Origin: Utricularia gibba
Taxonomy: Eukaryota > Plantae > Magnoliophyta
Length of the DNA stretch: 35,972 bases
Direction of reading: 5' to 3'
NCBI GenBank assembly: GCA_002189035.1
Contig: NEEC01000089.1
Span: 1-35,972 of the forward strand
In this document: positions 821 through 32,710 of the stretch, one piece after another
How positions within the stretch are numbered: position 1 is the first letter of the stretch
Layout: every line of letters starts with the position of its first letter
Notes under the pieces: model-generated
Told to the model about the DNA's origin: nothing
Seen by the model: only the letters and a program-made list of their open reading frames with translations
Databases searched by the model: none
Position numbers and translations under genes: made by a program

Positions 821-3352
821 TCAATCCTTCCAAGTCCAAGATCCTCGTCCAGTCTTCAACAAAGCAGCATAGAGCAGCTCATTCCATGAATCTGGTACAC
901 CTGGTAAGCACCAATGACTGCAGTCTTCGGCATGTATTTCTTGTTGAGCAGATTGATAATCCGGCCGGTAGATTGAAGGATGGGCATCCTTTCTGTAATC
1001 TGTAAGCTTGCTTATGTTTAGATAGGAAACAGGGGTACGCATATCCTTCAGCACGTACTCCAGGACCTTCATCTTCGAAGGGTACTTCGCTAAATATGTA
1101 TCATTGTATATGGGCTCAGTCTCCTGGTGGCACTGCCCTCCTGAATTCCAAGGTCCACCCCTGCAATACAATCAGGAAAAAGGGTTAAGATTCAGTAATG
1201 TGAATCTATAAGTAGGAAGAAAAAAGACATTTTTTTTAACCTGAAATGAGTGACAGAGAATCCTCTGAAAATCACTTGGGTATGGCTATTCTTGATGTTC
1301 TTATCCACCCATCTTGCCCAAGTCGTCAATGCCCTTTTGAAAGCTTCCAAAACTTTCAATCTTGGATAAACGTGATTACCTTCCTGGTAGTAGTCTTCCC
1401 TTAAAAAACACAAACAGAACAGACTCAACACCCGTACTTTTAAAAGCAACTGCTGCAACTGAGAAGAACCAATTGATTTCAAGAACTCACCCTTGAGAAG
1501 TTTTCTCATGAGTCCACCAGTGGCCGGTATTGAATATAAGAACATCTGCATCATGATACATATGTGTCGTGTCGTCCATTAGATCAAGTCGGAGAGTCTC
1601 AAAGGAACCATTTTTCCCTTTGAAAGATGATTCCTTGACAAGGAATGGAGAACTGACGAAGTCTATGGAGCAGTTGTAATCCTGAAAGCAAAACCAGATA
1701 AAGACAGAAGGATTAGACAACAGAACTGAAGTGCAACACTTTTTCGGATAATTTGTATGGGGTGAGTGTCGATCATGCCTCGTATCTGAATGCATAAAAA
1801 CCTTTCTTTTTGAAATCGTGTCTTCCAGAAATCTCATACACTCGGCTTTTATCCTCAACACCATGACGAAGCAGGCAAACAAGAGACTCCCACATGTTCC
1901 TGTTGAGAGAATCTCCAACAAACACTAGCTTCTGCCCCCTCAGCCTCTCAAGAAAATCAGTAGCATTGAACCTATTAACCACATAGCATTCAGTCAACAA
2001 AGTGGACTTTAATTTAAGAGAGCAACTTTTGTTATAAAAACATATTGAACCACTAAGACATCCTTGACTTCAACACAATAAAAGAAGAATCCAAAGGGAT
2101 AGATACCAGTCTGCGACTCAGCTCTTCATTAAGGCAGAAACTTTCAAAATTCTTACTGAACCACTAAAACATGTTGTGACTACAAGTAGCAAATGTGTGA
2201 AAACTCGATCAACCATGAAATAGGTAGAATGGGAAGTGAACACAATCTTAAACCAGAGACAGTATCGGATTCTTTTTGTATGTCTACTCCACGTCAAACA
2301 TATCTTGGTGGTTCAAAACCTCTAGCCATACATAGCAGCTAGTAAACGTTCAAGTCAAACAGATGCAAAGTTTTGCAGGTAAACTAATTCTTGACTGGGA
2401 TTGAAAGACAAAAAAGATGTACCTAGGAATTTCACAGCCGTATGGTTGCCATCTCCACTTCTCAAATTCATTATCCCGTCTCCCATTAAGGTGGCAATCG
2501 AAATCCTTATCGATGTAAGGGCAGGACAGTGGAGGATAATATGGGAGTGTCATCCTTCCCCATCTACCATCAAACAAAATCACAGTTCTTCAAAGATTTG
2601 GTGACGACTGGCGGAGTTTCAGTTCCTTCGCTCCTCTTACCATCACCAGCAGCCGTAGGATTCGTCGCATTCACAGAAAATTCACCGGAACCGGCGTCCA
2701 CTGCATCGGTTTCGTTCTCTTTACCACTTGATAAGACTGGATTTGGAGCAGATTCTGATCCGTTATTTGCAAAGGTGGCATTTTGAGGGTTATCAAAAAC
2801 CTTCTTTTGGCCATCAGATCTTGTTGGCGCCGCTTCATTCAATTCACCCAAATGGGCGTCCAAAGACTCCCCCTTGTACTCGCTAGCAGTTGCTATGACT
2901 GAACTCTTGGCAGACTCCGACCCATTATTGGAAAAGCGTGCATCTTGAGGCTTATCAACCACTTCACCCACATGGGCATCATCAAAAACCTCCTTTTTCC
3001 CATCCGAACTTGTTGCCACCGTGGGATTCAATTCACCCGAACGATTCCCAGCGGTCTGAACAATTTCAGAAACATTAGCGCTTCCGGAAGTAGTACCATT
3101 ACCTGAATCGGTGTAGGAAACTGAAAAGGGCCAATGCAACAAGGGGGGATTACTCAGAGAACCAAAGCTATTCAATCTCTGGAACAAAGGGTCAAGGAAA
3201 GGCGTCCGGGAAGACGCATTCACCAACACTGCACTCACAACTATGAAAGACAACAGTACCACTACACTAAACGGCGAAACAGCCTTCCTCTTAAACGAAG
3301 ATAGCCACTGATCTGAATCCGCTCTGGGTAAACCGGCAAAAAAGGTAACCAT
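821..3352 (-). CDS. TBL2: Trichome birefringence-like (TBL2-like) polysaccharide O-acetyltransferase; 5 exons: 3352-2423, 1971-1779, 1681-1491, 1399-1241, 1160-821; apparent indels at about 2545-2580
   Basis: N-terminal TM helix, low-complexity stem, [19 protein letters not shown] motif ([17 protein letters not shown]) and DxxH motif ([19 protein letters not shown]). Peptides such as [18 protein letters not shown] and [12 protein letters not shown] match my recollection of Arabidopsis TBL2. Splice sites read by hand. Confidence 0.85.
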
Positions 3353-3713
3353 CTAGACTAAGTACACCGAAAACTCTACAAAATCCAAAGAATGCGGGTA
3401 ATATAAAGAAGGTCGGCTGTCTGTTGCTTTGATGAGCTTGAACAAAAATACACTGCAAAAGACAACGATGGTGGTAACCATAAAATTAGTGGAGGAGAAG
3501 CAGGAAGACGGAGGAGACACTTCGAGAGCGGACGTTAAGGGGCATCTTTGTAACATCACCCTCACCGACGATGAGCCTCTGCCACGTGGCACCGGGAACC
3601 CATACGCCGTACGCGGACGCGCCCCATGGAAACTGTTCTCTGCTTATGAAAGGTGCTCCTGGGCAGTGGGCACCACAGTCTTAAATCCTCGGATGGTCAT
3701 TCAAACGTACTGA

Positions 3714-3782
3714 TTGGGCCTTTAAGCCCATCGTATATTGAGCCGATAATTCAAGGCCCGATGTTCGCCCAATGGGCTTTCA
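3714..3782. promoter_or_regulatory. Cluster of site II-like (TGGGCY/RGCCCA) motifs upstream of the TBL gene
   Basis: tgggcc, agccca, gcccaatgggct within about 70 bp, about 400 bp upstream of the TBL ATG. Motif match only. Confidence 0.3.
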
Positions 3783-3999
3783 TTTTTCTCAAAAAAAGAA
3801 TATTTTTTTTTGTTCACATTTCATCTTCGTCGTCCCTGCCGCTGCTGCACGGCGAACAGAAAAACCAGAAGCTTCCTCTAATTCAATGCTTTTTACAGTA
3901 ACTATTCTCAGATCACATCACGCCTTCCTCAAAAACAAGCTAAACTTCGTACTACACAACTTCAAAGTTGTGTACAAAACAAGGGGGCCTAAGCTATAT

Positions 4000-6727
4000 C
4001 TATCTCGGGCCCGACAGTTCCATAGCCTCGACCATGGACGACTCCTCGAAGTAATCGGAATACCGTTCCGGCGGCAAGTTAAACGACCGCTGCCGTGGGC
4101 TCTCTTCTACACTCAGGGATTGCTCCCATTTCTCGGCAAGCCCATCGCCTTCAAGCATTCTCAAAACCTCGGACATCTTCGGCCTGTAAGAAGGATCGAA
4201 TTGTGTGCACAGGAGGGCCACCCGCACCATTTCTTCCAGCTCCATACCATCGAAGTCGTTCTTCAGTTCTTTATCCACCATCAGATTCAGTTTCCCATCC
4301 TGGTGAAGCTTTCTTACCTGAATGAACCACAAAATCAAGTATTGAAGGGATTTTGGTGCCTGGGTTTGAAGTAGCGATAGAACAACATACCCAGTCGAGA
4401 ATGGCGCCTTTCTGGCTCGCCCCACGTCCGAAATCAACAGCTTTCTGGCCGGTGATGAGTTCCAGGAGTAGGATTCCAAACCCGAAGACATCAGTTTTTT
4501 CAGATGATTGGCCGGTGGAGAGATACTCTGGCGCGATATGGCCGACAGTGCCACGGACTGCAGTGGTGACATGAGAGTCCCGGTGGTCCAAAAGCTTGGC
4601 TAAACCAAAATCTCCGACCACCGGCTCAAATCCTCTTCTAACAAAATGTTGGCTGCTTTCACATCACGGTGAATGATTTTGGGGTCACATTGTTCATGCA
4701 AATAAACGAGGCCCCGTGCAGTTCCAAGGGCAACACTCTTCCTCCTCGGCCAATCCAAAATCGGCCGCCCGTGACTCTGATCTGAAACTCAGACAAACCA
4801 GACATCACATGTTAAAGTTCATATTCTTGTCCAAGTGAACTGAGATCAAGCAATCACCTCTTAGTCTTGACGCAACGCTACCATTAGGCAGATACGGGTA
4901 AACGAGGAGGCGCTCGTTCTCCGTGGAGCAGAAGCCCCAGAGACGAAGAAGATTTCTGTGGACTGCTAAACTGATAAGCTCTACTTCTGTCTGAAACTGG
5001 GCTTCGCCCCGACAGCGTTGAAGTCGTTTAATCTTTTTACCGCAACCACTGTGCCATTGCCAAGCCGTCCTTTGTATACAGTACCGAATCCTCCCCTTCC
5101 GAGAATGTTTTTGGAGTTGAAATTATCCGTTGCTGCCTTCAGCTCCTTGAAACTAAATCTTCTCAGATGACCTAAACGTATTTCTGGGTCGGATTGATCT
5201 GCCAAAAAGAAAAAAATTTTACAGAACAATCGGAAGGATTGAAGAATTTGAATGACTTCGACAGCATACCGTGATCATCGAAGACTATTTGTTGATTCCG
5301 TCTGAACCCCCACCAGACAAACAAGCCAAGCAATACAATGGAGAGGAAACCAGCGATGCTTGCACTAATAGCAATGGTAACAAGATGTTTCGATCTGGAC
5401 TCCGATGGACCTGAAAACCCAACAAGTAAATACAAAAAACATTGGAGTACCTCTGTAAATCCAGCTACTTACTTTTTAAAGCGTCTGGGGGAAAGGATAA
5501 TGGTTCAGGGTACACAACTGTGCAGTTGTCTGGAGAACTAATCCCACAGATAAGTGGATTTCCATTAACTCTAAAAGCAAAGCAAAATCATGAACCAGCC
5601 ATAATCAGTACAGAAGAGAAATACAGAAAGGAAGGGGATGACTCACTTGAAGGTTCTAGCAGAAACTCTTGGTGGCGATCCACTAAGATTATTGAAAGAA
5701 AGATCTCTGCAGCAATTCATGGACAGTAATACGTGAGATACTCTATTACTGAACTACAGTTCGTAATGCGAGGTCAAAAAGCGAATCGAACAGTATAAAT
5801 CGGGTAAGCCAAAAGAAACCACGTACAAAAGTGTGAGGCTTTGGACTTTAGAAAGAGTAGCGGGAATGGGCCCGGTAAGAGTGTTGTTGTTCAGCCGCCT
5901 GACTTGCTCAAGGAAAGACAAGCACATGAGAGCAATCTTCATGTTGAGAATGATTTAAACTCCAAATCTACGTTACTCACAGATACTTCAAACTCGTGAG
6001 ATCTCCAAGAGAAGATGGAATTTCTCCAGTGAGCTTGTTTTGAGAGATCAAGAGTCTGAAGCTTCTCCAGCTTCCCGATAACATCAGGAATTGGACCTGA
6101 GATTTCATTGTTCTGCAGTGACCTGCAATGGCCCTAGCCATCAATGTAAATCAATTTAAACAATACTGGAAACAAGGGAATCTTACACAGATTGCAAACG
6201 CGTGAGATTTCCTATTCCTGTTGATATGATTCCGGACAAACTCAGGCTAGGCATCTCTCTGAAAGGGAGAAGCAGCATCATTCCACTGTAGATTAACTAG
6301 GAACTCGAAAATATTTTTCTAATTGATAAGCAGCTTTCTTACAGAGCAAAAACATATCCATCTGGTGAACAAGTAATAGTCCTCCAGCTGCATGGATCTA
6401 CAGAGTTAGCATCCCAATTCTCCAGGACGTTGTAAGGATCACGCAAGTCATTCTTGATTGAAATCAAAGCAACAACTGCAAGCAGTTAACACGAAGCTCA
6501 CAATTGCTGCCAATTATTGCAGATAAAACACAGGTAACTCGAAGAACTGTGCGCTCGAGGGAAAAATTCATAGAAACTTTACTGATAAGAAACGACCAGA
6601 AACTCGGAAGAAGAAGAAGCTAACCTTCATAGTTCACCCCCGATGGCGAGAGGGTGGAATAGGTGCTCTCAGTAGCTACTAAAACTAGGAAACTAATCCT
6701 TAGAAGAAAGGAAATGAGTTTCCCCAT
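4000..6727 (-). CDS. NIK3: LRR-II receptor-like kinase, NIK3/CIK1-like; 11 exons: 6727-6625, 6475-6343, 6258-6187, 6122-5981, 5898-5827, 5706-5647, 5570-5473, 5410-5270, 5198-4859, 4781-4391, 4317-4000; three apparent 1-2 bp deletions
   Basis: [15 protein letters not shown]-terminus, [12 protein letters not shown], 72-bp LRR exons, TM helix, [58 protein letters not shown] and MELSGPR C-terminus. SERK/NIK-type exon pattern with GT-AG introns. Confidence 0.9.
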
Positions 6728-8575
6728 CCCAGCCAACTCAAGAAAGTTGTCCTGTTTTACATGAATCACCTTGTGTTTGTCAAAATAGGATCACCTTTCT
6801 AATAAACGTTCTTTCCTGAATGCAGATATCGGAAACCCAGATGCAATATTGAACAAAAACAACAGAGTTCCTTGGAGAAGATTGGAGAGAACCGTGAAGA
6901 AGCTATAAACAACACAAATGAGAGATGCCAGGTAATAAAGACAGCAGAGACAGGAAATTTTGAGATCTGGGAATCCGAATTCCTTGAATTATCTGAACCC
7001 GTTCAGGGTTTAAGAAAATCCCAAAGCCTTCCCCTCCAATAATGATGGCAAAGAAGGCATTTGAAACTTCAACCTCAGCGACCCTTCAAAGGAAACGTCG
7101 CACTCCTCTCAAGATTAGCATCGCACTCACACCCCCTTACTGTATCGTGTATAATGCTCTGGGCAGCACATGTGATCGTATTTGCAGCATTTTGGCATCC
7201 AATACCAATACGCTGCTGCAACAGTGCAAGGCATCAAACCTGTAGCAAGATGTGGACTGCACCCCCAAAAACCTTTTTTTTTTTCCAGGAAAAAGTTCAC
7301 CTTTGTTCAAATTCCACACACTGAATTTAAAAACAAAGGAAAAAAAACTGGGGAAACGCTCAATATTCAGCGATTTTGACTGAAAAGATGCGCTGCAGGA
7401 GGAGCATGTTAGGGTAGGCCAAAAAGCAAGAAAGAACAATAAATAGTGGTGGGGGAGCCAAGTGCTTTTACCTTGTCCCCATAGTTGTCGTTTCGCTTTC
7501 GTCTTTAATGAAAATTCCATTTACTCAACAATCAAGAAGCTTCACATATCATTTAAATTAGTAATCAATGGCAAAACTGAAATACGGTGCCTGAATCCTC
7601 TCTCCGCCGCGGAGACACACCGGCTGCAAGGCGCCATTTTTGTCGCTTTGGAAAATCTGCACATTCTCCACCGCACCTCGAAAACGCTAACGCCTTTAAT
7701 CAAACCCAAAGCACCCTTTAATCGCACTCGCATTGACCTCGTCGCAGTGTGATTATGCCCTTTGCTCCTCCCCAATTTTCAAACCCTAACACGAAAGTAT
7801 CACAAAACGTTCTCTGAACTCGCAAGTTCATTGATTTTTCGATTTATAAATACAATTTTTTAATGTCGGAATTAATTAATAACCTGCTTTAAAACGCTAT
7901 TAACAAAGTCATCAAGAAATCAATTCCTGGGATTTTCAAAACGTGGCCCTTAGCCCAACGATAGTGATCATTGTGGAGGGGCCCCGCCTACGTCTCAGGC
8001 GGGGCCCAGCCTATGGTCTATATATACTAAAGGATAGTTATTTTTGGGTTTACCTTTTCTCAAAAACATCATTTATCAGTCGTGTTTTTTGGGCTCATGG
8101 GCCGGACAATCCGCGCAAGCAAAACCCAGGCTCAATGGGCCCCTAACGTACTTGGGCCTGTTTCTGGTTTAGTTGGTTGTTGAGTAGTGTGTATGTGGCC
8201 CGATCCAATTGTTGAGATTCAGGAATCCGATTCTTATGCTGTATTATTTTAAAATATATACATATTATATAAATTAATATAATCATAATTAAAAAAATTA
8301 ATTTATCAAATACCACAATTAAATTAAAAAAATTATTAATATCTAAATGTCAATGTGAAAAAACATTGATTAGGGTTAACTATATATTTAGCATACGCAA
8401 GGCAAGCCTCATTAAGGGCTTGAAGAATGGATAGGGGTATTCGTAAAGTATGTATTTAGCATAGGGAAGGCAAGCAGCACCACACACGCATGGTTTCCTT
8501 GGAGACCAGATACAATGAAACCACGATTATTCTGAGAGAAGCGGACTCCATGATCGTTTCTTTGTGCTTGTGCAC

Positions 8576-10059
8576 TCAATCTGCAGCAGCCCAAATCAGA
8601 TCGTTCTGGAAGATCCAATGGCAGACCTCTGTCTTTCCCGGGCTGGAGCGCAGTGCCTGGAAGGCTGCGTGGTCGGGGCTCCAGGAAGAAGTATCCTCAT
8701 GGCAGATGGCAACGCCATGGTTAACCTGGGACTTCGTTTTGGGATCCAGGATGTCGGCTTCGTAGACCCGGACGCCATTGACAGAGTGGCAGTAGTAGAG
8801 CAGGTATGGATAGAGTGTCTGATGACACGAGACTGAGTTGGTCACTTCTCCACCATTGATCCCTTTCACGTCTCCCAGTAAGATCACGCCATTGGAGCCG
8901 GCCGGGGTATCCATGGTTCGAACTTCCGCGTTTCGGCCCAGGATGAAGGTGGCGAAGTCGATCATGTCCTCGATCGACGCCACGCACCGCTTGGTTTCGC
9001 CTCGGTTGGGGACACGCTCGCAGCCCTGGGTCGCGTCGGAGATTATTTTGGACATGCTTGAGTCATTCGCAGCGTGAAAAATAGTTCTGATTTCGGAGAT
9101 CTTGGAGGAGGCGAAGGGCAGCTTCGAGACGATGGCGCGGGGCAAGAATGACCTTCTGGGCTTCTGATCGATAAAATCCGGCATCCGCAACTGGGTACCG
9201 GGTTTCAACATGGCCTCCCGGAAGAATATCCCCGGCGGCGGCGCCGGCTTGTTTATCCCCTTATAGCCTTCGAAGTCCTTGTGGTAGTGGTTGTATTCTT
9301 TGAACTCCGGAGGAAAGTCCGCCGGAGGCTTTTCATGTCCCTATTCAGAACACAGCTTTGCACTTTAAGTACAAATTAAACAAAAATATTTGTCAAAAAA
9401 TAATTAACTAAATTCATTTCGCTATTATAAATTATTATTTTATTAATATTTAAATTTGAATTTTGTAATAAATGCACGATTTCAACGTGTTTACCTCTTT
9501 ACTGCCTCCCTTTTGGTTGTATGTCTGGAATTGAGGCGTTTTATTTTCCTGTTTTAAAAATAAACATGCTCAAGAAAACAGAAGGAATTAAAAAATGAAT
9601 TTATACACAAGCTGCTTTTTACCTTTTGATCTTCCAGTTCTGGGGAGTCCTCGTGGTGTTTGAAACACATGAGGTTCGCCTGTGCGCAGAACACCGGCAG
9701 TCGTTGCGACAGGGCTTTCGGGTCATCGGCAATCTTACGGAATTCGGCGAACTGCGCCGCCGTGAGCGGTGACGCCTTATCCAGCAAGAACCCCGAGAGC
9801 GGTGCATCGTTGGTGACATGCTTTTCCCAGTAACTAAACAGATAAGCTTTAGGCGTCGACGGAATTTTCTCTCCTCCTCCGGCGACCCTTCCCACCTTCA
9901 GGATAATATTTGTGTTTTGGTTAAACACCGTGCAACTAGTTGTGCAACTAACAGATGAGCAAAGCGTGGAAGCTTATGATTCCTTACATGGGAAATTAGA
10001 GGTACGGCGAAGGCCAACAGCCACATCAGGCGGCGGTGGAGTGGATGATCAGACGCCAT
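8576..10059 (-). CDS. BURP copy A: PG1beta-derived BURP-domain protein, 369 aa; exons 10059-9988, 9895-9623, 9340-8576
   Basis: Exon lengths 72/273/765, all phase 0, GT-AG. Signal-like MASDHPLHRRLMWLLAFAVPLISH; pro-region TPKAYLFSYWEKH...DKASPLTAAQF...FCAQANLMC; short core FKEYNHYHKDFEGY; BURP domain with CHQ, CHS, CHE, CHW intact. Confidence 0.85.
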
Positions 10060-10344: not shown

Positions 10345-11906
10345 TCAGTCTGCAACCACCCATGTCAGATCATTCTGAAAGATCCAATGACAGACCTCGA
10401 TCTCACCCGGGGCGGAGCCCAGGGCGGCGAAAGCCGGATGGTTCGAGCTCCAGGAAGAAGTATCCTCATGACAAACAGCAACCCCATGGTTGATCTTGGC
10501 CTTCGTTTTCAGATCCAGGAGGTCGGATTCATAGACCCGAATGCCATTAACGGAGTGGCAGTAGTAAAGCAAGTAGGGATAAAGGGTTTGATGGCACGAA
10601 ACGGACTTGGTCACTCTTCCACCGTTGATTCCTCTGACGTTACCCAGTAGCACCGTGGCATTGGAGCCTGCTGCTCCATCCATGGTTCGAACAACCACGT
10701 CTCGGCCAAGGACGATTGTGGCAAAGTCGATCATGTCCTCGATCGACGCCACGCATCGCTTCGTCTCGCCCTGGTTAGGGGCTCGCTCGCAATCCTCGAT
10801 TGCCTCCGTGAACATTTTGGACTTGCTTGAGTCGTCTTGCGCGTGAAAAATAAACTTGATATCGGATATCTTGTCGGAGGAGAACGGCAGCTTAGAGATG
10901 ATGCGGCGCGGCAGAAATGACCTTATGGGCTTTCTGTCTATGAAGTCCGGCATGAGGATCGGGGCCCCGGATTTCAGCGTCGCCTCTCTGAAGAATATGC
11001 CCGGCGGTACCCGCTTGTTGCCGTCCGCGTCCTTGAGGTACTCGTTGTAGCGTTTGAATTTGGTGCCGGAATATATCGGCTTTTCCGGCTGTCCAAAATA
11101 ATGTACCAATTTTAAAATATGAAAAAAAATGCATTTTTTTTCCAAATTAAAGTCATTTTCAATAATCTGCAGCATAATTTCAATACCTTCTTAGGACCTC
11201 CTTTATTGTAATTCTGGAAATCGACATCCAGTAATTCTGGTTTTATATTTTCCTGATAATAAATGGAAGAAAAATAATTCAAATAAGAATAAATGTTTTT
11301 TTCTTACAAAAAAAAATTATTTATTTTAAATTATAAAATTAAATCCTGTAATTACTTCCATCAGCTGAAGAAGAAACTTCGTTTGTTACCTTTTGATTTT
11401 TCTGAGAGTCGCCCCTGCGATACTCGTTGTAGAGAATGAAAGCGATAACCAAGGATGTGTTCTTAACACTTTCCACAGAATCGGGAAAGCACATGAGGTT
11501 AGCCTGTGAACAAAGCTCCGGCAACCGCTCCGACAGGGCTTTCGGATCATCGGAGACCTTTAAGAACTCAGCGTACTGCGCCGCCGTGAGGGGCGACGCC
11601 TTATCCATCAAGAACTCCGATTTGGGTAAGCCACCAGCGACATGCTCTTCCCAGTAACGAAGGAGATAAGCTCGAGGAGTTAACAGATGATCCTCGGGTT
11701 TACCAGAATGAACTCCTCCACCTACCCTTCCCACCTGCATCCATTATCACAAAGAAAAGTAAGCTACTTCACTCAGTCCAGGAAACAAAACCGAGTTCGG
11801 GATCTCTCACGTTGGAAATTAGAGCGAAGACGATGACCACCGTCGACAAGTGGAGGCGCCACTGACGAGAAGCGGCGGGTGCCGCCGAGGAGGTTATGGG
11901 AAGCAT
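10345..11906 (-). CDS. BURP copy B: PG1beta-derived BURP-domain protein, about 394 aa; exons 11906-11811, 11734-11390, 11088-10345
   Basis: Exon lengths 96/345/744, phase 0. Cores FILYNEY (exon 2) and FKRYNEY (exon 3); four CH motifs intact. The last acceptor (ggacag|CCG at 11088) is inferred from frame. Confidence 0.8.
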
Positions 11907-15526: not shown

Positions 15527-16727
15527 TCAGTCTGCAATGACCCACATCAGATCGTTCTCGAAGATCCAGTGGCAGACCTCGATCTTCCCGGGACTAGACC
15601 CCAACTCCGCGAACGCAGAGTGGTCGGCGCTCCAGGAAGAGGTATCCTCGTGACAGATGGCCACCGCATGGTTGATCTTGGACTTGGTTTTTGCATCCAG
15701 GATATCGGCTTCATAGAGGCGGATGCCGTTCACGGAGTGGCAGTAGTAGAGTAAGTAGGGATACAGGCGCTGGTGGCACGAAACGGACTTGGTCAATCTC
15801 CCGCCATTGATGGCTTTCACATCACCCAGCAAGGCAGTGGTGTTGGATCCGGCCTTGGTGTCCATTGTACGGGCGACCACCTTCTGGCCCAGCACCTGCG
15901 TGGCGAAGTCCACCATGTCTTCGATCGACGCCACGCACCGCTTCGTCTCGCCCACGTTGGGTTCCTGCTCGCAGTCGTCGAGTGCGTCGGTGAACATTTG
16001 GGTCCTGCTTGGGTGATCTCCGGCGTGGAAGATCTTCTTGATATCGGCCAGTTTGGAGGAGGCGAAGGGCAGCTTTGAGACGATGGTGCGCGGCAAGAAC
16101 GACCTGGCGGGGTTCTTGTCGGTGAAGTCGGGCATGGTTATCAGGACGCCGGGCTTCAGCGTCGTTTCCCTGAAGAACATCCCGGGGGGAAGCCAATTGG
16201 TAACCTTTTCATTCTCGCCCAGGCCCTTGATGAAGCGGCACGAACGACCAAAGAATCTATAATAAAATTGATACGAGAAGCAGCGGCGACGTTGGTCCAA
16301 CGTCTTCTCGGTGTCGCTGTCGGCGGAATTAGGTAAGCACATAATGTTGGCCTGTGAACACAGCTCCGGCATGTGCGCCGACAGGGCGTTCTGATCGTCG
16401 GCGATCTTGTTGAAGGCGGCGTATTGGGCGGCGGTGAGCGGGGACGCCTTATCCATCAGAAACTCGGACTTGGGTAGACCGCTGGTGACGTGCTTCTCCC
16501 AGTAGCTCAGGGCATAAGCTTTGGGCGTCAACGGGTTCTCAACTCCGATAACCCCGACCACCTTCAATCGTTAAATACAGAATAATGCTTGGGTTTTGGG
16601 GAAGCCGCAGTAAAGGAAAAAGATTTCTTACATTGGAGACCAGAACGGAGGCGAGAATGCACAGCCACGTGAGCCGGTGTTGAAGCGGCTGAGGAGAAGT
16701 GGCGGCGGCCGCGGATATGGGAGACAT
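15527..16727 (-). CDS. BURP copy C, 376 aa; exons 16727-16632, 16561-15527
   Basis: 96-bp signal exon plus a 1035-bp exon in one ORF. Core RRRCFSYQFYYRFFGRSCRFIK; four CH motifs intact. Confidence 0.9.
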
Positions 16728-16793
16728 CGCCGACTGAAAAGGAGAGGGGGAACCGAGTGAGGATGCAGGATTAGAGTAGAAGAAGCACCTTCC

Positions 16794-16799
16794 TTTATA
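16794..16799 (-). promoter_or_regulatory. TATA box of BURP copy C
   Basis: TATAAA about 67 bp upstream of the ATG, conserved in copies D and E. Confidence 0.55.
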
Positions 16800-16959
16800 G
16801 GCAAATGGCGGCGGCTGAGTGCATTGCATGGAGAAATGGACATGTGATTGATAATCCATAAATTGTCCAACTAAATCAAGAACCAATATGCACAAAAGAC
16901 GATCATTTGGAAGTCAACATCCGATGGCCAACACTTTTGGGAATCTTTACATTAAAACC

Positions 16960-18944: not shown

Positions 18945-20154
18945 TCAGTCTGCAATGACCCACATCAGATCGTTCTCGAAGATCCAGTGGCAGGCCTCGA
19001 TCTTGCCGGGACTGGACCCCAACGCCACGAACGCCGAGTGGTCGGCGCTCCAGGAAGAGGTATCCTCGTGACAGATGGCCACCGCATGGTTGATCTTGGA
19101 CTTGGTTTTTGCATCCAGGATATCGGCTTCATAGAGGCGGATGCCGTTCACGGAGTGGCAGTAGTAGAGTAAGTAGGGATACAGGCGCTGGTGGCACGAA
19201 ACGGACTTGGTCAATCTCCCGCCATTGATGGCTTTCACATCACCCAGCAAGGCAGTGGTGTTGGATCCGGCCTTGGTGTCCATTGTACGGGCGACCACCT
19301 TCTGGCCCAGCACCTGCGTGGCGAAGTCCACCATGTCTTCGATCGACGCCACGCACCGCTTCGTCTCGCCCACGTTGGGTTCCCGCTCGCAGTCGTCGAG
19401 TGCATCGGTGAACATTTGGGACATGCTTGGGTGATCTCCGGCGTGGAAGATCTTCTTGATATCGGCCAGTTTGGAGGAGGCGAAGGGCAGCTTTGAGACG
19501 ATGGCACGCGGCAAGAATGACGTTGCGGGGTTCTTGTCGGTGAAGTCGGGCATGGTTATCAGGACGCCGGGCTTCAGCGTCGCTTCCCTGAAGAACATCC
19601 CGGGGGGAACCCAATTGGTAACCTCTTCATTCTCGCCCAGGCCCTTCTTGATGCCGCACTTAGGACGACCCCTGAATCTATAATAAAATTTATACGTGAA
19701 GCAGTAGCGGCTGAAAAACTTGTCAGTAGTGTTCTCAGTGACGCTGTCGGCGGAATTAGGGAAGCACATAAGGTTGGCCTGTGCACAGAGGTCCGGCATG
19801 TGGGCCGACAGGGCGTTCTGATCGTCGGCGATCTTGTTGAAGGCGGCGTATTGGGCGGCGGTGAGCGGGGACGCCTTATCCATCAGAAACTCGGACTTGG
19901 GTAGACCGCTGGTGACGTGCTTCTCCCAGTAGCTCAGGGCATAAGCTTTGGGCGTCAACGGGTTCTCAACTCCGATAACCCCGACCACCTTCAATCGTTA
20001 AATACAGAATAATGCTTGGGTTTTGGGGAAGCCGCAGTAAAGGAAAAAGATTTCTTACATTGGAGACCAGAACGGAGGCGAAGACGAACAACCACGTGAG
20101 CCGGTGGTGGAGCGGCTGAGGAGAAGTGGCGCCGGCCGAGGATATGGCAGACAT
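18945..20154 (-). CDS. BURP copy D, 379 aa; exons 20154-20059, 19988-18945
   Basis: Nearly identical to copy C outside the core. Core FFSRYCFTYKFYYRFRGRPKCGIKK; four CH motifs intact. Confidence 0.9.
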
Positions 20155-20219
20155 GGCCGATTGTAGAGAAGAGAAGAGGAACCAAGTGAGGATGCAGGAA
20201 TTGAAACGAAGCACCTTCC

Positions 20220-20225
20220 TTTATA
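20220..20225 (-). promoter_or_regulatory. TATA box of BURP copy D
   Basis: TATAAA about 66 bp upstream of the ATG. Confidence 0.55.
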
Positions 20226-20939
20226 GTATCATTGGGCAGGCAGTGGCGGCTGCTGCGTGCATTGCATGGGGAAATGGACATGTGATTGATTACCCATAAA
20301 TTATCGAAGAAAATCAAGAAATTGAAGATGCAAAAATCGTGAACCATGTTCGGCAATATGCACAAGAGGATCATTTTGAAGGCAACATCCGATGGCTAAC
20401 ACTTTTTGTGAATATTTATTGTATATATTAAGTCCAAATAATCAATAAATATAAAGTATATTAAAAAATATTATACACAATCAATTAATATTAATATTTT
20501 TTATATAATTAATTATTTTAATTTTAATTCACTATTTGAAATTGATTGTTTTAATAGTTATCCTAGAATCAAGTTAGTTTTTAATTCGATTAAAACTTTT
20601 TTTGTGTGTAATTGTAAATAATGTTCAATTTATAAATCGATCTAATTTTTATCATCTAAGTTTAATACATCTTTTTTTTAATTGAAATTCAGATCAATAT
20701 AAAATTCATCTTGACTATTCAAGTTGTGTTCCAAGACAAATGTTTTGATAGTATGTTAAAATCTAGTATCCGATACATTGAGCGAACATACATAAAGGTA
20801 AAATATATAATACATGTGAATCATATTAAAAAAAATTATGTACAATCGATTACTAAGGATTGATAATATTTTTTTATATTTAAATATTTGAATTTCAAGT
20901 ACCTATGTTAGATTTTTTGTTTTAATAACAACCATTCAA

Positions 20940-21930: not shown

Positions 21931-23494
21931 TGCAACAAAAGAAGAAAAAAATCAATTTTGAAAATTATTTAAAATATTATTTCAACTTTTTAAAATTATA
22001 TACCCTATTCTATTAATGAAAATTCATCATTTCAATTTCAATAGAAAAAAATATGATTTCACAAAAAATTAACATATAATTCATTCTCAAATTTCGAAAA
22101 AATTAAATTTGCCTTATAAGCAATTGGCAAACAAATTTATTGCCACTCATTTATTTTGTTTCATGAATTAAAAATTATATTTTAATTTCACAAAACATAA
22201 AAAAGAATAATCTGTGTATTTTAATTTATAAAAACTTGTGATCACCCTATGCTTGGTGCTAACCACTCTTTTAAATAATATATCTTTCATTTTATAATTA
22301 CACCTTTATCATCCACTTTGAAATTGTTTAATGAGTTTTAAATACATTCAATTTGATTATTTTAAATTAAGAAAAAGAAAAAAATGAAATAGTAAAATAA
22401 TGAAAAAATGATTGTTGGGAATAAAAAAAAATTCCTTCATGTTCATGAATTGAGAATAATTTTCTTTTTTGGTATCCCAATTTATAATTGTAATATTTTC
22501 TATTATCTATTTAAATTAGTAGTTATCTTGAATGTTTGATCTGTGGTGATTCCAATGGTTCCAAAAGGGTCCACATGCCATTTGAACATAAAGGAACTCT
22601 TATCATTTCCTCAGTTATATATTTATATTTGATTCTTTTTTATCAATAATTTTTTTCAATAAAGAACTAGATATATCAAACTACATAGTTATAAAGTTTA
22701 CAAATAACTTATCTTATACAATTTTTTAAAGTATGTAATGGATTAGTTATTTATTCGTGCCAATTCCGTTCATCGAGATACATGTAGCTGAATATTTATA
22801 TTTGATATATTTGACAACAATCATTAAAAATTGATTTTAATAAAATAAAAAATAGGTCTTTATGACGTGTGTGTTTAAATTTCTATGAAGTCATTTATGT
22901 TTGATAATAAAACTGATTTTAAAATATTTAAAAAAGTACTAACTATTTCTAATATAGGTATGCCCTATTGTGTGTTGCCTGACATTGTGAAGCAATTGAC
23001 TCTCTTTTTCTTTTTTTTAGGATGGCATATCGAAACCCTAAAATTAGGGATTTGATTGTAAAATTGGGAGGTTTATAACCAAATTTAGGGTGTATATATA
23101 GTGGCTGGCCGTAAGGAACATCCATATGTACATGTAGTGGCCATTAAGGGACTTTCCGCACTTATAAAAGTAATCATCCTAATTTTCAATCACACATATT
23201 ACGATTAATTTTTTTATATATATGATGGGTAACTTTTTCACATAGTTAATAGATGATGACTACTTTTTAAATTTATTTGATTATTTCATTAGGAGGCCAA
23301 GACATGCCATGGTGTATATTATGTTGTGTAGATGGGTGTAACCGAAAGCAGCATTGATACTAATTCACACGTTCAAATCCAACTGAAACAGAAAGCAAGC
23401 GCCACACCACATGGTTTCCTTCCGATGCATACAACGAAGGAAACCACTCTTATTCTGACCGGGACGGTCTCCATACTTTCTCTTCTTCCCCTGC

Positions 23495-26335
23495 TCAGTC
23501 TGCAATGACCCACGTCAGATCGTTCTCGAAGATCCAGTGGCAGACCTCGATCTTCCCGGGACTGGAACCCAACGAAACGAAGGCGGCGTGATCGGCGCTC
23601 CAGGAAGAGGTATCCTCGTGGCAGATGGCCACCGCATGGTTGATCTTGGACTTGGTTTTTGCATCCAGGATATCGGCTTCGTAGACGCGGATGCCGTTCA
23701 CCGAGTGGCAGTAGTAGAGTAGGTAGGGATACAGGCTCTGGTGGCACGAAACGGACTTGGTCAATCTCCCGCCGTTGATGGCTTTCACATCACCCAGCAG
23801 GACATTGGTGTTGGATCCGGCCTTGTTTTCCATTGTACGGGCGACCACCTTCTGGCCCAGCACCAGGGTGGCGAAGTCGACCATGCCCTCGATCGACGCC
23901 ACGCACCGCTTCGTCTCGCCCACGTTGGGCTCCCGCTCGCAGTCTCCGAGTGCCTCGGTGAACATTTTGGACATGCTTGAGTCGTCGCCGGCGTGAAAGA
24001 TCTTCTTGATATCAGGCAGCTTGGAGGAGGCGAAGGGCAGCTTTGAGACGATGGCGCGCGGCAGGAACGACCTTGCCGGCTTCTTGTCGGTGAAGTCGGG
24101 CATGGTTATCTCGGCTCCCGGCTTCAGCGTCGCCTCCCTGAAGAAGATCCCCGGCGGCACCCAATTGGTAACCTTTTTACTATCCCCCGTTTCCTTCTTG
24201 TAGTGGTTATAGCGCTTAAAGCGAATATCAGTGTCAACCCCTCGCTGTTAAAAAAAAAAGTTACCCTTCGGAATTTAACCATAACAACATTTTTTCCCAC
24301 GGTAAAAACTTTCTTACCGCAGCATCTACTTGGCTGTCCTTGTGGTAGTGGTTGATATCCACCAATTGAGCCGCGGTGAATTCCTGAAAGGAAAAAGAGT
24401 TAAAAAATTTCTATCCCTCTGCTTATTAAATTTCACCTCGGTTTACCTCTTTGTGTCCTCCCTTTTGGTGATAGTGTGTGAAGCTAATATCCGGCTTCAC
24501 TTCTTCCTGCTTAAACGATCAAAACAATTCATAAGCAGTAAAAAACTTTAGTCACCTTCGGGCAACCGGTTTACCTTCTTGTGGCCACCCTTTTGGTGGT
24601 AGCGTGAAAACCTGATATCTGTGACCTCGGGCTTCACCTCCTCTTCCTGTGAACATGAAGACCGGTAACGTTAAAAAAAAAAAAAAAGTAAAATCTTGTT
24701 GTTACTGTTAGAGGTTGGTATTTTTTAATTTACCTGTTTGTGACCTCCCTTTTGATGGTAATGGTTGAAGCTGATGTCCTTGACTGCTTCAGGCTTTATC
24801 TCGTCTTCCTGTAATAATATACAGTAAATTAGTTAAAATTCTTTTTTTAACCTTTAATATTCTTCCTTTTTTTAGAAAAATAATTATTTCTTAATAGAAA
24901 AAGCAACGAATTTTATAACTAATTTACCATTTTGTGGCCACCCTTTTGGTGGTAACGGTGAAAGCTGATATCTTGGACTGCCTCAGGCTTTATCTCGTCT
25001 TCCTGTAATAATATACTGTAAATTAGTAAAAATTCTTTTTTTTAACCTTTAATATTCTCCCTTTTTTTAGAAAAATAATTATTTCTTCATAGAAAAAGCA
25101 ACGAATTTTATAACTAATTTACCATTTTGTGGCCACCCTTTTGGTGGTAACGGTGAAAGCTGATATCTTGGACTGCCTCAGGCTTTATCTCGTCTTCCTG
25201 TAATAATATACTGTAAATTAGTAAAAATTCTTTTTTTTAACCTTTAATATTCTCCCTTTTTTTAGAAAAATAATTATTTCTTCATAGAAAAAGCAACGAA
25301 TTTTATAACTAATTTACCATTTTGTGGCCACCCTTTTGGTGGTAACGGTGAAAGCTGATATCTTGGACTGCCTCAGGCTTTATCTCGTCTTCCTGTAATA
25401 ATATACTGTAAATTAGTAAAAATTCTTTTTTTTAACCTTTAATATTCTCCCTTTTTTAGAAAAATAATTATTTCTTGATAGAAAAAGCAACGAATTTTAT
25501 AGTTAATTTACCATTTTGTGGCCACCGTGTTGGTGGTAACGGTGGAAGCTGATGTCCTTGACTGCCTCAGGCTTTATCTCGTCTTCCTGTAATAATATAC
25601 AATAAATTAGTAAAAATTCTTTTTTTAACCATAAATGTCTTCCTTTTTTAAAAAAACTAACTATTTATTAATAAAAATGAATTTTAAAATTAAATTACCA
25701 TTTTGTGGCCACCCTTTTGGTGGTAACGGTGGAAGCTGATATCCTTGGCAACAAGCCTTGCATCTTCCTGTTAAAAGAAGCGGGTAAAAGTAAATACATA
25801 TTAAAACAGTAAAAATTATTTACCCTTTCATTATGTAACGTTTTACCTGCTGGTGATCATCGGTAGATCGGGGCGGTAATGGTTGTAGCCGTGAAAATCG
25901 ATGTCCGACGTCTTCTCGGTGGCGCTGCCGGCGGAATTAGGAAAGCACATAAGGTTGGCCTGTGAACAGAGCTCCGGCATGTGGGCCGACAGGGCGTTCT
26001 GATCGTCGGCGATCTTGTTGAAGGTGGCGTATTGGGCAGCGGTGAGCGGGGACGCCTTATCCATCAGAAACTCGGACTTGGGTAGACCGGTGGTGACGTG
26101 CTTCTCCCAGTAGCTCAGGGCATAAGCTTTGGGCGTCAACAGGTTCTCAACTCCGATAACCCCGACCACCTTCAATCATTAAATACAGAATAATGCTTGG
26201 GTTTTGGGGAAGCCACAGTAAAGGAAAAAGATTTCTTACATTGGAGATCAGAACGGAGGCGAGGATGCACAGCAACGTGAGCCGGTGGTGGAGCGGCTGA
26301 GGAGAAGGGGCGCCGGCCGAGGATATGGCAGACAT
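23495..26335 (-). CDS. BURP copy E, 12 exons, about 603 aa if one 1-bp deletion near 25865 is corrected; exons 26335-26240, 26169-25847, 25767-25699, 25586-25512, 25392-25318, 25197-25123, 25002-24928, 24808-24734, 24646-24575, 24506-24447, 24383-24318, 24244-23495
   Basis: Nine mini-exons of 69, 75, 75, 75, 75, 75, 72, 60 and 66 bp. Each is bounded by cag|GAA and |gtaa, is phase 0 and is stop-free. The terminal 750-bp exon carries an intact BURP domain. Exon 2 is 323 bp, one base short of phase 0. Not supported by transcript data here. Confidence 0.75.
24734..25767 (-). repeat. Tandem exon+intron repeat with a 194-195 bp period inside BURP copy E
   Basis: Exon starts at 25586, 25392, 25197, 25002 and 24808. 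The exons at 25392, 25197 and 25002 and the two introns between them are nucleotide-identical. Confidence 0.95.
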
Positions 26336-26400
26336 GGCCGATTGTAGAGAAGAGAAGGGGAACCAAGTGAGGATGCAGGAACTGAAACGAAGCAGCTTCC

Positions 26401-26406
26401 TTTATA
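26401..26406 (-). promoter_or_regulatory. TATA box of BURP copy E
   Basis: TATAAA about 66 bp upstream of the ATG, same context as C and D. Confidence 0.55.
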
Positions 26407-26544
26407 GTGTCATTGGGCAGGCAGTGGCGGCTGAGTGCATTGCATGGAGAAATGGACATGTGATTGGTTACCCATCAATTATTGAAGAAAATCAAGAAAC
26501 TGAACATGCAAGAATACATGTATCCTGAGCCATGTTCCGCGATA

Positions 26545-30683: not shown

Positions 30684-32655
30684 TTAATCCGCGACGACCC
30701 ATGTCATATCGTTCTCGAAGATCCAATGACACACTTCGATCTTACCCGGGCTGGGGCCCAAGGCGATGAAGGCCCCATGATCTGGGCTCCATGAGGAGGT
30801 GTCCAGGTGGCAAATAGCCACGCCGTGGTTGATCTTGGACCGGGTGTTCGGGTCCAGGATATCCGCTTCGTAGACCCGGACCTTGGGAACCGAATGGCAG
30901 TAGTAGAGCATGTACGGATACAGGCTTTGGTGGCACGACACCGACATCGTGACGTTGCCACCGTTGATCCCTTTTACTTCGCCCAGTAAGACTTGAGAGT
31001 TGGCGCCGGCGGTTGTGTCGGTGGAGCGTACCGTCACGCTCCGGCCCAACACGGACGTCGCGAAGTCGATCATGTCCTCGATGGACGCCACGCACCGCTT
31101 CGTTTCACCCGCACTCGGGGCGCGTTCGCAGTCGTGCAGCGCATCGACGGCCATTTTAGAAATGCTTGATTCCTCCCCTGCATGGAAAATCTTCTTGATC
31201 TCGTGCATCTTTGAGGATGAAAACGGCAGCTTCGAGACGATGCCGCGCGGCAAGAATGATCTTTTCGGCATCTTGTCTCGGATGTCCGGCATCGGCATTA
31301 GAGTGCCCTCTTTCAGCATCGCCTCCCTGAAGAATTTCCCCGGTTCCACCCATTTGCTTACCTTTGTTGCGTCCACGGATGCTGCCGGAGGTGAGCTGTC
31401 GTTGCGGTAACTGGAGAATGTGGTGGGGGTGGCCTTGTCGTACTCTTTGAACGTGTTGTTCACACCGTATATCTTGAAATCGACGGTTGTGGCCTTGGCG
31501 CCTTTGCCGTAGCCGGTGAATTTGTCGGTGCCCTCGTTGAAACTTTGGCCGTAATTCACGAATCCCAACTCCGAGCTGCTAGATCCCTTGCCGTAGGATT
31601 CGAAACTGTCATCCCCGACGTTGGATTGATTTCTGTAACTTTTGAAAGTATCTGAAGCACCGCTTCCGCCGGTGCCGTAGTTGCGGAAATTATTCTGCGG
31701 CACGTTGCCGTCGTCCCCGTAAGAGGTGAATGTATCATTTGCTTCTTTACCATGCTCCCCGTAGTTCCTGAAATTGCTGCCGATTACGTTGGATAATCCA
31801 CCTCCGTAGCTTGTGAATGTGTTGTCGATGTCGCTACCCTTCTTCCCGTAGCTAGCGAATGTCTGGTCTCCGGCGTTGGCTTCGTCGGAATAGGAGGTGA
31901 ATTGTTGATCCCGGTCATTGCCTCCATCGGAATAGGATGCGAATCTGAGATTGGGGTTGTTCGTTTGCTTGCCGTAATTACTGAATTGGCCCTCACCCCC
32001 GCCGGCGCTGGTTCCGTAGGTGTTGAAGTTCTGGTCCACGACGTTGGAACCAGTGGCGTAGGCCACAAAACCATCGTTGTGGTCGGTGGAGTCGCGACTG
32101 TAGCGCCGGAAAGTATTCACAACCACGTTACCGTTTTCAGAGTATTTCTGGAAAGCATCGGCTCCTTTTACGCGGCCATCCCCGTAGCTGGTGAAGTTCT
32201 GTTCCGTATAACTCGCGAAATTAACATCGGTATCATGCTTCGCCAAACTCGGCGACAGATCAGGGAAACACAAGAGCTTCGCTCGTGCACAGAATTCCGG
32301 CAATTGCGCCGAAAGCGCGTTCCTATCGCCAGCGATTTTACTGAAGGCGGCGTACTGCGCCGCCGTCAGCGGCGACGCCTTGTCAATCAGAAGCGCCGGT
32401 TTCGGTAAATCATTGGCAATCCGTTTCTCCCAATACCGTAGCAGATAACCTCTGGGTGTGAACGGATTTGAATCCGCCAGGCGTCTTCCACCGGATACCT
32501 GCAGCAAGCCACACAGAAATCAGTGAGGATTCATTCCGGATACCGAACTTAATTCCGTTGCTAACCTCGGAAATCGAAATGCAAGCGATGAAAAGGAAGC
32601 ACAAGAGCCGACGGGCCGGAGATGAAGCCGACGCCGCGTGGGAAACGATCCCCAT
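30684..32655 (-). CDS. PG1beta: BURP copy F: canonical polygalacturonase non-catalytic beta subunit (PG1beta/AroGP-like), 634 aa; exons 32655-32566, 32498-30684
   Basis: Signal exon, NPFTPRGYLLRYW pro-region, 21 FxxY motifs counted by hand (FASY ... FSSY), and a BURP domain with CHQ, CHS, CHL, CHW. Confidence 0.95.
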
Positions 32656-32710
32656 TTTCGCTTTCAGAAGAAGAGAACCGTTGATGCATTTCCTACAAAC
32701 CACCCTTCTT

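Follow-up and report, generated by a model that had tools for sequence, protein, structure and literature searches.

A PG1beta-derived BURP gene of Utricularia gibba with a His-rich FxxY repeat encoded by phase-0 mini-exons

Structure, transcripts and reading frame of gene E

The stretch analyzed here, called the window throughout, comprises positions 1 to 35,972 of contig NEEC01000089.1 from the Utricularia gibba assembly GCA_002189035.1. It carries six tandem BURP-domain genes (A to F), all on the minus strand between 8576 and 32700. Gene E, the subject of this report, was delineated by three-frame translation and direct peptide search as a 12-exon gene spanning 26335-23495 on the same strand. 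Nine of its exons are mini-exons of 60-75 nt, which are uniformly phase 0, divisible by 3 in length, and bounded by cag upstream and gtaa downstream. A preliminary description of this DNA had placed nine such exons between a pro-region and an intact BURP domain, and we located every peptide that it listed, each encoded on the minus strand by one of these mini-exons. The flanking sequences DIDFHGYNHY (exon 2) and DIRFKRYNHY (last exon) are also present, which brings the number of FxxY motifs in the spliced protein to 10, as had been counted. The pattern of CAG, 19-25 open codons and GTAA occurs in 10 units between 25800 and 24250, compared with a mean of 0.14 and a maximum of 3 in 500 shuffles.

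The repeat units share a fixed aromatic frame and a variable interior. Phe and Tyr are invariant, while the two residues between them can be HR, NH, SR, TH, HG or KR. The residue after Tyr is His in 8 of the 10 units, including all eight mini-exon units that contain FxxY, and Asn in the other two; Ser, Arg or Asp precedes the Phe, but never Asn. The FHRYH-type core put forward in the preliminary description does not hold up in this comparison, because its inner His is not conserved; the recurring core is F..Y, and the invariant His residues lie beyond the Tyr. The repeat region contains 11.8% His, 17.1% Lys plus Arg and 18.4% Asp plus Glu, with an acidic and then a basic half alternating in each unit. 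Mini-exons 3-5 are identical in three successive cassettes, and the introns there measure 119-120 nt with a GC content of 17-18%. Over the whole gene, introns have 13-38% GC versus 49% for the mini-exons.

The last exon encodes the BURP domain in full, matching the Pfam profile PF03181 over positions 1-215 of 216 (E = 6.2e-65), in agreement with the earlier claim that the domain is intact. Its four CH motifs conform to the regular expression CH-X10-CH-X23-27-CH-X23-26-CH-X8-W, as do those of all six paralogs in the window. The N-terminal FF motif is present as GIFFRE, and all invariant Cys, His and Trp columns of a 62-sequence BURP alignment are retained. The AlphaFold2 (AF2) model of the last exon has a predicted local distance difference test (pLDDT) score of 90 and a predicted template modeling (pTM) score of 0.84. 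When this model was submitted to Foldseek, the only PDB matches were the AhyBURP entries 8SY2 and 8SY3 (E = 1e-12, probability 1.00). At the opposite end of the protein, a putative signal peptide is suggested by hydrophobicity alone.

Transcript data were evaluated as assembled contigs, rather than reads, of RNA runs X1, X6 and X3 aligned to 23350-26480, with DNA run X8 as a comparison. The joints in the three RNA runs match the predicted introns, and their ends read CT..AC on the plus strand, equivalent to GT..AG on the gene strand. X1, X6 and X3 all confirm intron 1 (26170-26239), and further joints connect exon 2 to mini-exon 1, mini-exon 1 to mini-exon 2, and mini-exons 6, 7, 8 and 9 to one another and to the last exon. 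No gene E splice joints occur in the contigs of X8. The 12-exon model is thereby supported by RNA at both ends of the array; between mini-exons 2 and 6, which are nearly identical, the short-read contigs collapse, though their loose ends still read the expected exon-exon junction sequence. Because of this collapse, the RNA evidence does not single out mini-exon 4. Minor joints bypassing entire units also occur (25391>25698, depth 141 in X6); they may represent exons skipped in frame, variation in copy number or contigs assembled through repeats. Given these joints and the collapse, the contigs do not fix the number of units per transcript. Gene E is abundantly expressed, with junction-contig word depths, a rough guide to expression level, of about 3,000-7,000 in X1 and X6. 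Thus, the locus is not silent, and its mini-exons are joined into abundant transcripts rather than passed over.

We note three further features of the locus. A TATAAA element (26407-26402) precedes the ATG by 67-72 nt. One spliced X6 contig nevertheless reaches 145 nt or more beyond the ATG in the upstream direction and takes in a further ATG, out of frame, at 26459; it could reflect an alternative start site or a contig artefact. The X8 contigs diverge from the window at 25639-25670, within the intron that separates mini-exon 1 from mini-exon 2, and run on into 231-255 unlike bases, which points to a structural difference in that accession, either an insertion or another arrangement of cassettes.

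The preliminary description overlooked a break in the frame of the gene. Spliced from the window as given, the coding sequence measures 1811 nt: mini-exon 1 begins in phase 0 but exon 2 closes in phase 2, and this mismatch throws translation out of frame and into stops after mini-exon 1. Three-frame translation and manual reading revealed no phase-compatible alternative donor or acceptor that would rescue it. The RNA contigs of X1, X6 and X3 contain one more G after 25869, producing a run of five G, and DNA run X8, which carries other single-nucleotide polymorphisms, has one more C after 25868. Every contig over this site, from three RNA runs and one DNA run, is one base longer than the window. 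Either extra base restores the frame, reading ..HYRPRSTDDHQQ at the exon boundary or ..RPGS.., and yields an open reading frame of 1812 nt (603 aa) with all 10 FxxY motifs; with this base the gene is intact. The simplest reading of the gap at 25870-25873 is that the assembly contains a homopolymer error. A pseudogene, in which the frameshift would be a private null allele and the sequenced individual would make no BURP protein from this locus, accounts for the 1811-nt coding sequence and its early stop, but we rejected it on the read evidence as highly improbable: the additional base is found in all spanning contigs and as two different alleles that are both in frame, the gap falls in a homopolymer run, the repeats bear marks of purifying selection, and the BURP domain is undamaged.

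Table 1. Coordinates of gene E features and of the other BURP genes in the window
Feature	Position	Strand	Description
Exon 1	26240..26335	-	ATG at 26335; 32 codons; hydrophobic signal-peptide-like stretch; donor AAT/gtaaga
Exon 2	25847..26169	-	PG1beta-type pro-region and first FxxY (DIDFHGY); holds the one-base gap in the G-run 25870-25873
Mini-exon 1	25699..25767	-	23 codons, FHRY; joints 25766>25846 and 25585>25698 confirmed by RNA
Mini-exon 2	25512..25586	-	25 codons, FHRY, HQHGGHK variant; joint to mini-exon 1 in X1, X6 and X3
Mini-exon 3	25318..25392	-	25 codons, FHRY; same sequence as mini-exons 4 and 5; loose RNA contig ends read exon-exon junction sequence
Mini-exon 4	25123..25197	-	Identical copy; rests on genomic sequence, RNA contigs collapsing here
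Mini-exon 5	24928..25002	-	Identical copy; loose RNA contig end at 25003 reads the 3' end of an upstream ..HKM exon
Mini-exon 6	24734..24808	-	25 codons, FNHY; RNA joint 24645>24733 and loose end at 24809
Mini-exon 7	24575..24646	-	24 codons, FSRY; joints on both sides in X1, X6 and X3
Mini-exon 8	24447..24506	-	20 codons, FTHY; RNA joints on either side
Mini-exon 9	24318..24383	-	22 codons, degenerate DINHYHKD, without FxxY; RNA joints on either side
Last exon	23495..24244	-	Final FxxY unit DIRFKRYNHY, FF motif, BURP domain with four CH motifs, stop codon
3' UTR (untranslated region), at least this long	23365..23494	-	X3 contig (record 9) runs from 23365 across the last exon into mini-exons 9, 7 and 6
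Tandem array of 195-bp exon+intron cassette	24726..25748		5.3 copies, 93% matches (Tandem Repeats Finder)
BURP gene A	about 8576-9928	-	Window cluster
BURP gene B	10345-11740	-	Window cluster
BURP gene C	15527-16895	-	Window cluster
BURP gene D	18945-20374	-	Window cluster
BURP gene F	30684-32700	-	Canonical PG1beta type; about 20 FxxY repeats in one exon

Family placement and origin of the repeat

Homologues were sought with an exhaustive HMMER profile search using the BURP exon and with two word-indexed searches. The BURP exon of gene E shares 61-65% identity with PG1beta-like representatives in the HMMER search, and over all comparisons its BURP domain is 61-67% identical to those of the PG1beta group. 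In the BURP-domain tree, genes A-E form one clade (Shimodaira-Hasegawa-like approximate likelihood ratio test, SH-aLRT, support of 100) nested among PG1beta-like sequences of Lamiales, with E sister to C+D (98). Gene F pairs instead with Genlisea aurea (83), which is also its best database match (71%). The relationship extends to the N-terminus, where exon 2 of gene E is 50-54% identical to Genlisea PG1beta and to window gene F through the first FxxY, aligning SDIDFHGY of gene E with TDVNFASY of PG1beta. Judged from these sequence comparisons, gene E is a member of a five-gene clade (A-E) derived from PG1beta, the non-catalytic subunit of polygalacturonase-1.

Gene E nevertheless departs from the canonical type. 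Like PG1beta, AroGP and AtPGL, it has invariant F-x-x-Y repeats, and it is tandem-clustered with gene F, whose FxxY motifs show the same combination of fixed Phe and Tyr with a variable inner pair. PG1beta repeats, however, are FxxY-led, about 14 aa long and rich in Gly, Asn and Ser, whereas those of gene E are 20-25 aa and rich in His, Lys, Glu and Asp. The motif occurs 10 times rather than about 20, and each unit has a mini-exon to itself in place of the single exon that holds all repeats of gene F. Because the 14-aa repeat is not preserved, we regard gene E as a PG1beta derivative and not as a canonical member. The searches retrieved only PG1beta-like proteins (at most 71% identity), and none of the approximately 25 sequences inspected contains FHRY/HQKGGHK units, though the libraries apparently hold no relatives from the source genus, so this is no evidence of uniqueness. 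Our literature searches likewise turned up no description of BURP repeats rich in His, no report of any PG1beta-type cyclase and no account of BURP genes from the Utricularia group.

The paralogs suggest how the repeat arose. Gene A has a single homologous phase-0 mini-exon (9496-9549, minus strand) encoding ENKTPQFQTYNQKGGSKE with the module FQTYNQKGGSKE, and gene B likewise has one (11187-11252, minus strand) encoding ENIKPELLDVDFQNYNKGGPKK (FQNYNKGGPKK). Neither contains His, and both are bounded by canonical cag and gta sites predicted from sequence. These homologous single exons indicate that the module, consisting of an acidic start, K-P, F-x-x-Y and KGG.K, occupied its own exon before gene E existed. 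Gene E multiplied this exon, together with its intron, as a 195-bp cassette by tandem duplication. Relative to the modules of A and B, three positions became His in the gene E units (F-H.., Y-H and GG-H-K). Introns are absent from the repeat region of genes C and D, which carry in place of repeats a short Cys-flanked insert that is aromatic and cationic (e.g. CFSYQFYYRFFGRSC).

Comparison of the older gene E units over the 15-codon block DI.F..YHQKGGHK. gives a proportion of synonymous differences (pS) of 0.5-1.0, near saturation, and a proportion of non-synonymous differences (pN) of 0.07-0.20. The resulting pN/pS values of 0.07-0.37 derive from about 7 synonymous sites per pair and, as an indicative rather than precise measure, suggest that the block is under purifying selection. 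Variation is confined to the two inner FxxY residues, the residue before Phe and the last residue, with Phe, Tyr and HQKGGHK fixed. Because the array has grown from phase-0 exon+intron cassettes, a change in copy number or the skipping of an exon keeps the frame.

A comparable gene design is found in a short BURP gene of Rhododendron vialii (L001:4316-8240, CP127076.1), which has three 63-nt phase-0 mini-exons and, joined to the BURP exon, a fourth unit. The 21-aa sequence AFKVAGPAVQIGYGKSFNE.K is encoded by every unit, and three whole units distinguish the annotated isoforms (443 and 380 aa). As in gene E, a new repeat is carried on mini-exons (flanks cag and gtgaat) in a PG1beta-derived gene. 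It differs in that the repeat has neither FxxY nor His and the introns are 0.5-2.5 kb; its sister in the tree is the long PG1beta of Rhododendron. The two genes evidently acquired this design independently.

As separate observations, the end of mini-exon 7 and the start of the following intron (ACAAGAAG and GTAAACCGG, 24566-24582) align with the last-exon sequence coding for Y-K-K-E-T-G (ACAAGAAGGAAACGGG, 24186-24202). The alignment has a z score of 2.8, reached in 7 of 300 shuffles, and hints faintly that the donor GT of mini-exon 7 was born in former coding sequence through a one-base change. Elsewhere in the window, open reading frames at 51-563, 821-1921 and 4000-4621 resemble, by eye, a pectin methylesterase-inhibitor-type protein, a trichome-birefringence-like protein and a receptor-kinase domain.

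Proposed chemistry and product of the repeat

BURP domains oxidatively cross-link aromatic side chains in a Cu-dependent manner, acting in cis when fused to their substrate or on split precursors (PMC11253845, PMC12186524). Mature PG1beta consists of nothing but the repeat domain, a wall polypeptide in which all identified FxxY Phe residues are 2 Da lighter. This shift is read as didehydro-Phe, the responsible enzyme being unknown, and is described for alfalfa, Arabidopsis, cannabis and maize (PMC5313189). The cyclopeptide-alkaloid class is instead characterized by an ether between the Tyr phenol and a beta-carbon; arabipeptin A (core FLWGY) contains a 17-membered X-x-x-Y ring, and Phe is a known beta-oxy residue (PMC11253845). 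The preliminary description considered the gene E cores to be unlike the known Gln-initiated or Trp-containing classes, but it had overlooked this one: an F-x-x-Y cross-link would be exactly such an X-x-x-Y ring with Phe as the beta-oxy residue.

We propose that gene E encodes a secreted pre-pro-protein of a PG1beta-derived, lineage-specific clade. Eight of its units are 20-25-aa modules, rich in His and Lys and provided with an acidic spacer, that are encoded one per phase-0 mini-exon. On the disordered repeat region the Cu-binding BURP domain would act in cis, oxidizing each F..Y by 2 Da; the outcome would be either didehydro-Phe or an ether ring between Tyr-O and Phe-C-beta. Cleavage would then remove the pro-region and the BURP domain and leave the repeat polypeptide in modified form, whole or as large fragments, as the functional product. 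Such a polyampholyte would carry almost no net charge at pH 7 and become strongly cationic on protonation of its His residues, properties that would suit pH- or metal-dependent binding in the wall or in a secretion. Oxidation of F..Y in cis is deemed the most likely chemistry because both modifiable and linkable residues are kept at PG1beta spacing ahead of an intact BURP domain. As to the product, our analysis ranks a modified repeat polypeptide, as in PG1beta, as most likely and above the release of small macrocycles. The preliminary description saw in the gene a candidate burpitide precursor, and its N-terminus, pro-region, spacer-plus-aromatic repeats and C-terminal BURP domain do parallel those of fused precursors; the gene is nonetheless of PG1beta type, where the FxxY repeats end up in a mature wall polypeptide and not in a released small peptide. 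We hold the overall scheme of a cis-modified, processed repeat polypeptide tentatively, as our leading proposal but one with slightly less than an even chance of being right.

Several points weigh against it. In the literature consulted, no PG1beta-type BURP domain is shown to be catalytic. The AF2 model of the last exon, which includes the FKRY tail, predicts no docked pose for it: pLDDT is below 50 for residues 1-20 and averages 58 for residues 21-30. The 20-25-aa units are far in composition from the 14-aa PG1beta repeat. Secretion and processing are steps that we infer. Finally, the pN/pS values are only approximate, and the selection on YHQKGGHK could stem from a function unrelated to modification.

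The repeat protein might alternatively act unmodified, either as a His-rich, pH-switchable wall or secretion protein that binds metal or pectin, or as a polyprotein whose cationic His-rich peptides are set apart by acidic spacers, with the BURP domain serving only in folding, targeting or metal loading. The three His residues gained per unit relative to A (FQTYNQKGGSKE) and B, and then kept by purifying selection, would be expected of such a protein, as would the alternating acidic and basic halves. There is precedent as well in the metal binding of BURP proteins (SALI3-2, PMC4047006) and in PG1beta, whose basic and aromatic residues are believed to mediate its binding to pectin (PMC5313189). 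Yet this leaves unexplained why Phe and Tyr at i and i+3 are the most conserved aromatics in every unit, as they are in PG1beta where the position is modified, and why an intact, catalytic-type BURP domain has been retained. We consider an unmodified product possible but rather unlikely.

Release of small cyclic peptides is a further alternative. As a fused burpitide precursor, gene E would use its BURP domain to macrocyclize each F-x-x-Y, most plausibly through a 17-membered Tyr-O to Phe-C-beta ether, and proteases would free products such as (S)FHRY(H). A multi-core repeat joined to a BURP domain is the layout of the RD22-type fused cyclases (PMC12056006, PMC12037056), represented by LbaLycA, SkrBURP, KjaBURP and GheBURP. 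The cores of cyclopeptide-alkaloid precursors end in Tyr, typically with a C-terminal His demarcation (PMC10107690), and in all eight mini-exon units of gene E the invariant Tyr at the end of the motif is followed by His. Both the 17-membered X-x-x-Y ether (arabipeptin A) and Phe as a beta-oxy residue are precedented (PMC11253845), and the high expression of gene E also favors this possibility.

Close parallels in repeat layout are the split precursors ArbA2 and CamA1/2, which are ST proteins (PF10950) processed by the cyclases ArbB2 and CamB1. Like the gene E repeats, whose unit length is also 25 aa, their 25-26-aa units contain a charged recognition stretch with a hydrophobic residue and K-P or D-P, and the last core residue is an invariant Tyr, after which comes His or Gln; the X-x-x-Y ether ring is known from this group (arabipeptin A). 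Locally, ..IKPEAVKDIS-FHRY-HQKG of gene E resembles ..VAKDISVDPSGN-ILWY-HG of CamA2, though the shared KDIS is just a 4-mer and may be due to chance. The gene E repeats differ in being fused to the BURP domain and in having polar cores without the Asn boundary. No kinship to PF10950/DUF2775 was detected, as no Pfam family matches the four unit-containing gene E translations at E values up to 10.

Other comparisons are less favorable to small-peptide release. In the literature consulted, validated fused cyclases are RD22-type or USP-type (PMC12056006), and the BURP-domain tree places gene E outside both, in the PG1beta-type clade. RD22-type cores are hydrophobic, terminate in Trp or Tyr and often begin with Gln, whereas the gene E units lack an N-terminal Asn or Gln boundary and have polar or charged ring residues unlike those of any known burpitide core. 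Expansion of RD22-type repeats is ascribed in the same literature to tandem-repeat slippage, with per-repeat exons not described; gene E has expanded as exon cassettes. Cyclization has been demonstrated for the RD22-type enzymes, while gene E is only a candidate. AhyBURP, a USP-type cyclase from peanut (PDB 8SY2/8SY3), is the sole match of solved structure by sequence (E = 4e-13) and by fold (TM 0.54-0.67), and its CH motifs align with those of gene E; it is only about 22-30% identical and has its core peptide inside the BURP domain instead of in N-terminal repeats. Within the units, conservation continues for 7 residues past the Tyr, suggesting that the whole unit, not a small core, is the product. 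Moreover, Tyr-containing repeat precursors (S/TxY) are common in nature without a known molecule (PMC11250218). Small-macrocycle release thus seems to us unlikely. The class-defining feature of burpitides is a Cu-dependent macrocyclic side-chain cross-link made by a BURP domain (PMC11253845), and because this cross-link is only putative in gene E, we do not file the gene as a burpitide cyclase.

In the most far-reaching possibility, gene E would be the first autocatalytic cyclase of PG1beta type, forming 17-membered Tyr-O to Phe-C-beta rings on polar His/Arg F-x-x-Y cores and giving rise to new burpitides of the cyclopeptide-alkaloid type in a carnivorous-plant lineage. The -2 Da Phe of PG1beta, unexplained since 1992, would likewise be BURP-catalyzed, as the ether ring or as its elimination product didehydro-Phe. 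We regard this as doubtful, and less probable still than small-macrocycle release.

Implications for PG1beta-type BURP proteins

The role of the BURP domain in PG1beta-type proteins and the identity of the enzyme that modifies the FxxY Phe are both open questions, and gene E bears on each. It is a compact and regular candidate for a substrate-enzyme fusion, with eight near-identical units and abundant transcripts. Together with its one-unit paralogs A and B and the repeat-less C and D, it constitutes a natural test set for the function of the BURP domain and for Phe modification. Should small macrocycles prove to be released, burpitide chemistry would be extended to polar, His-rich cores. At the level of gene structure, the duplication of a phase-0 exon+intron cassette represents a route to multi-core precursors that is distinct from in-exon slippage, and the same design arose separately in Rhododendron.

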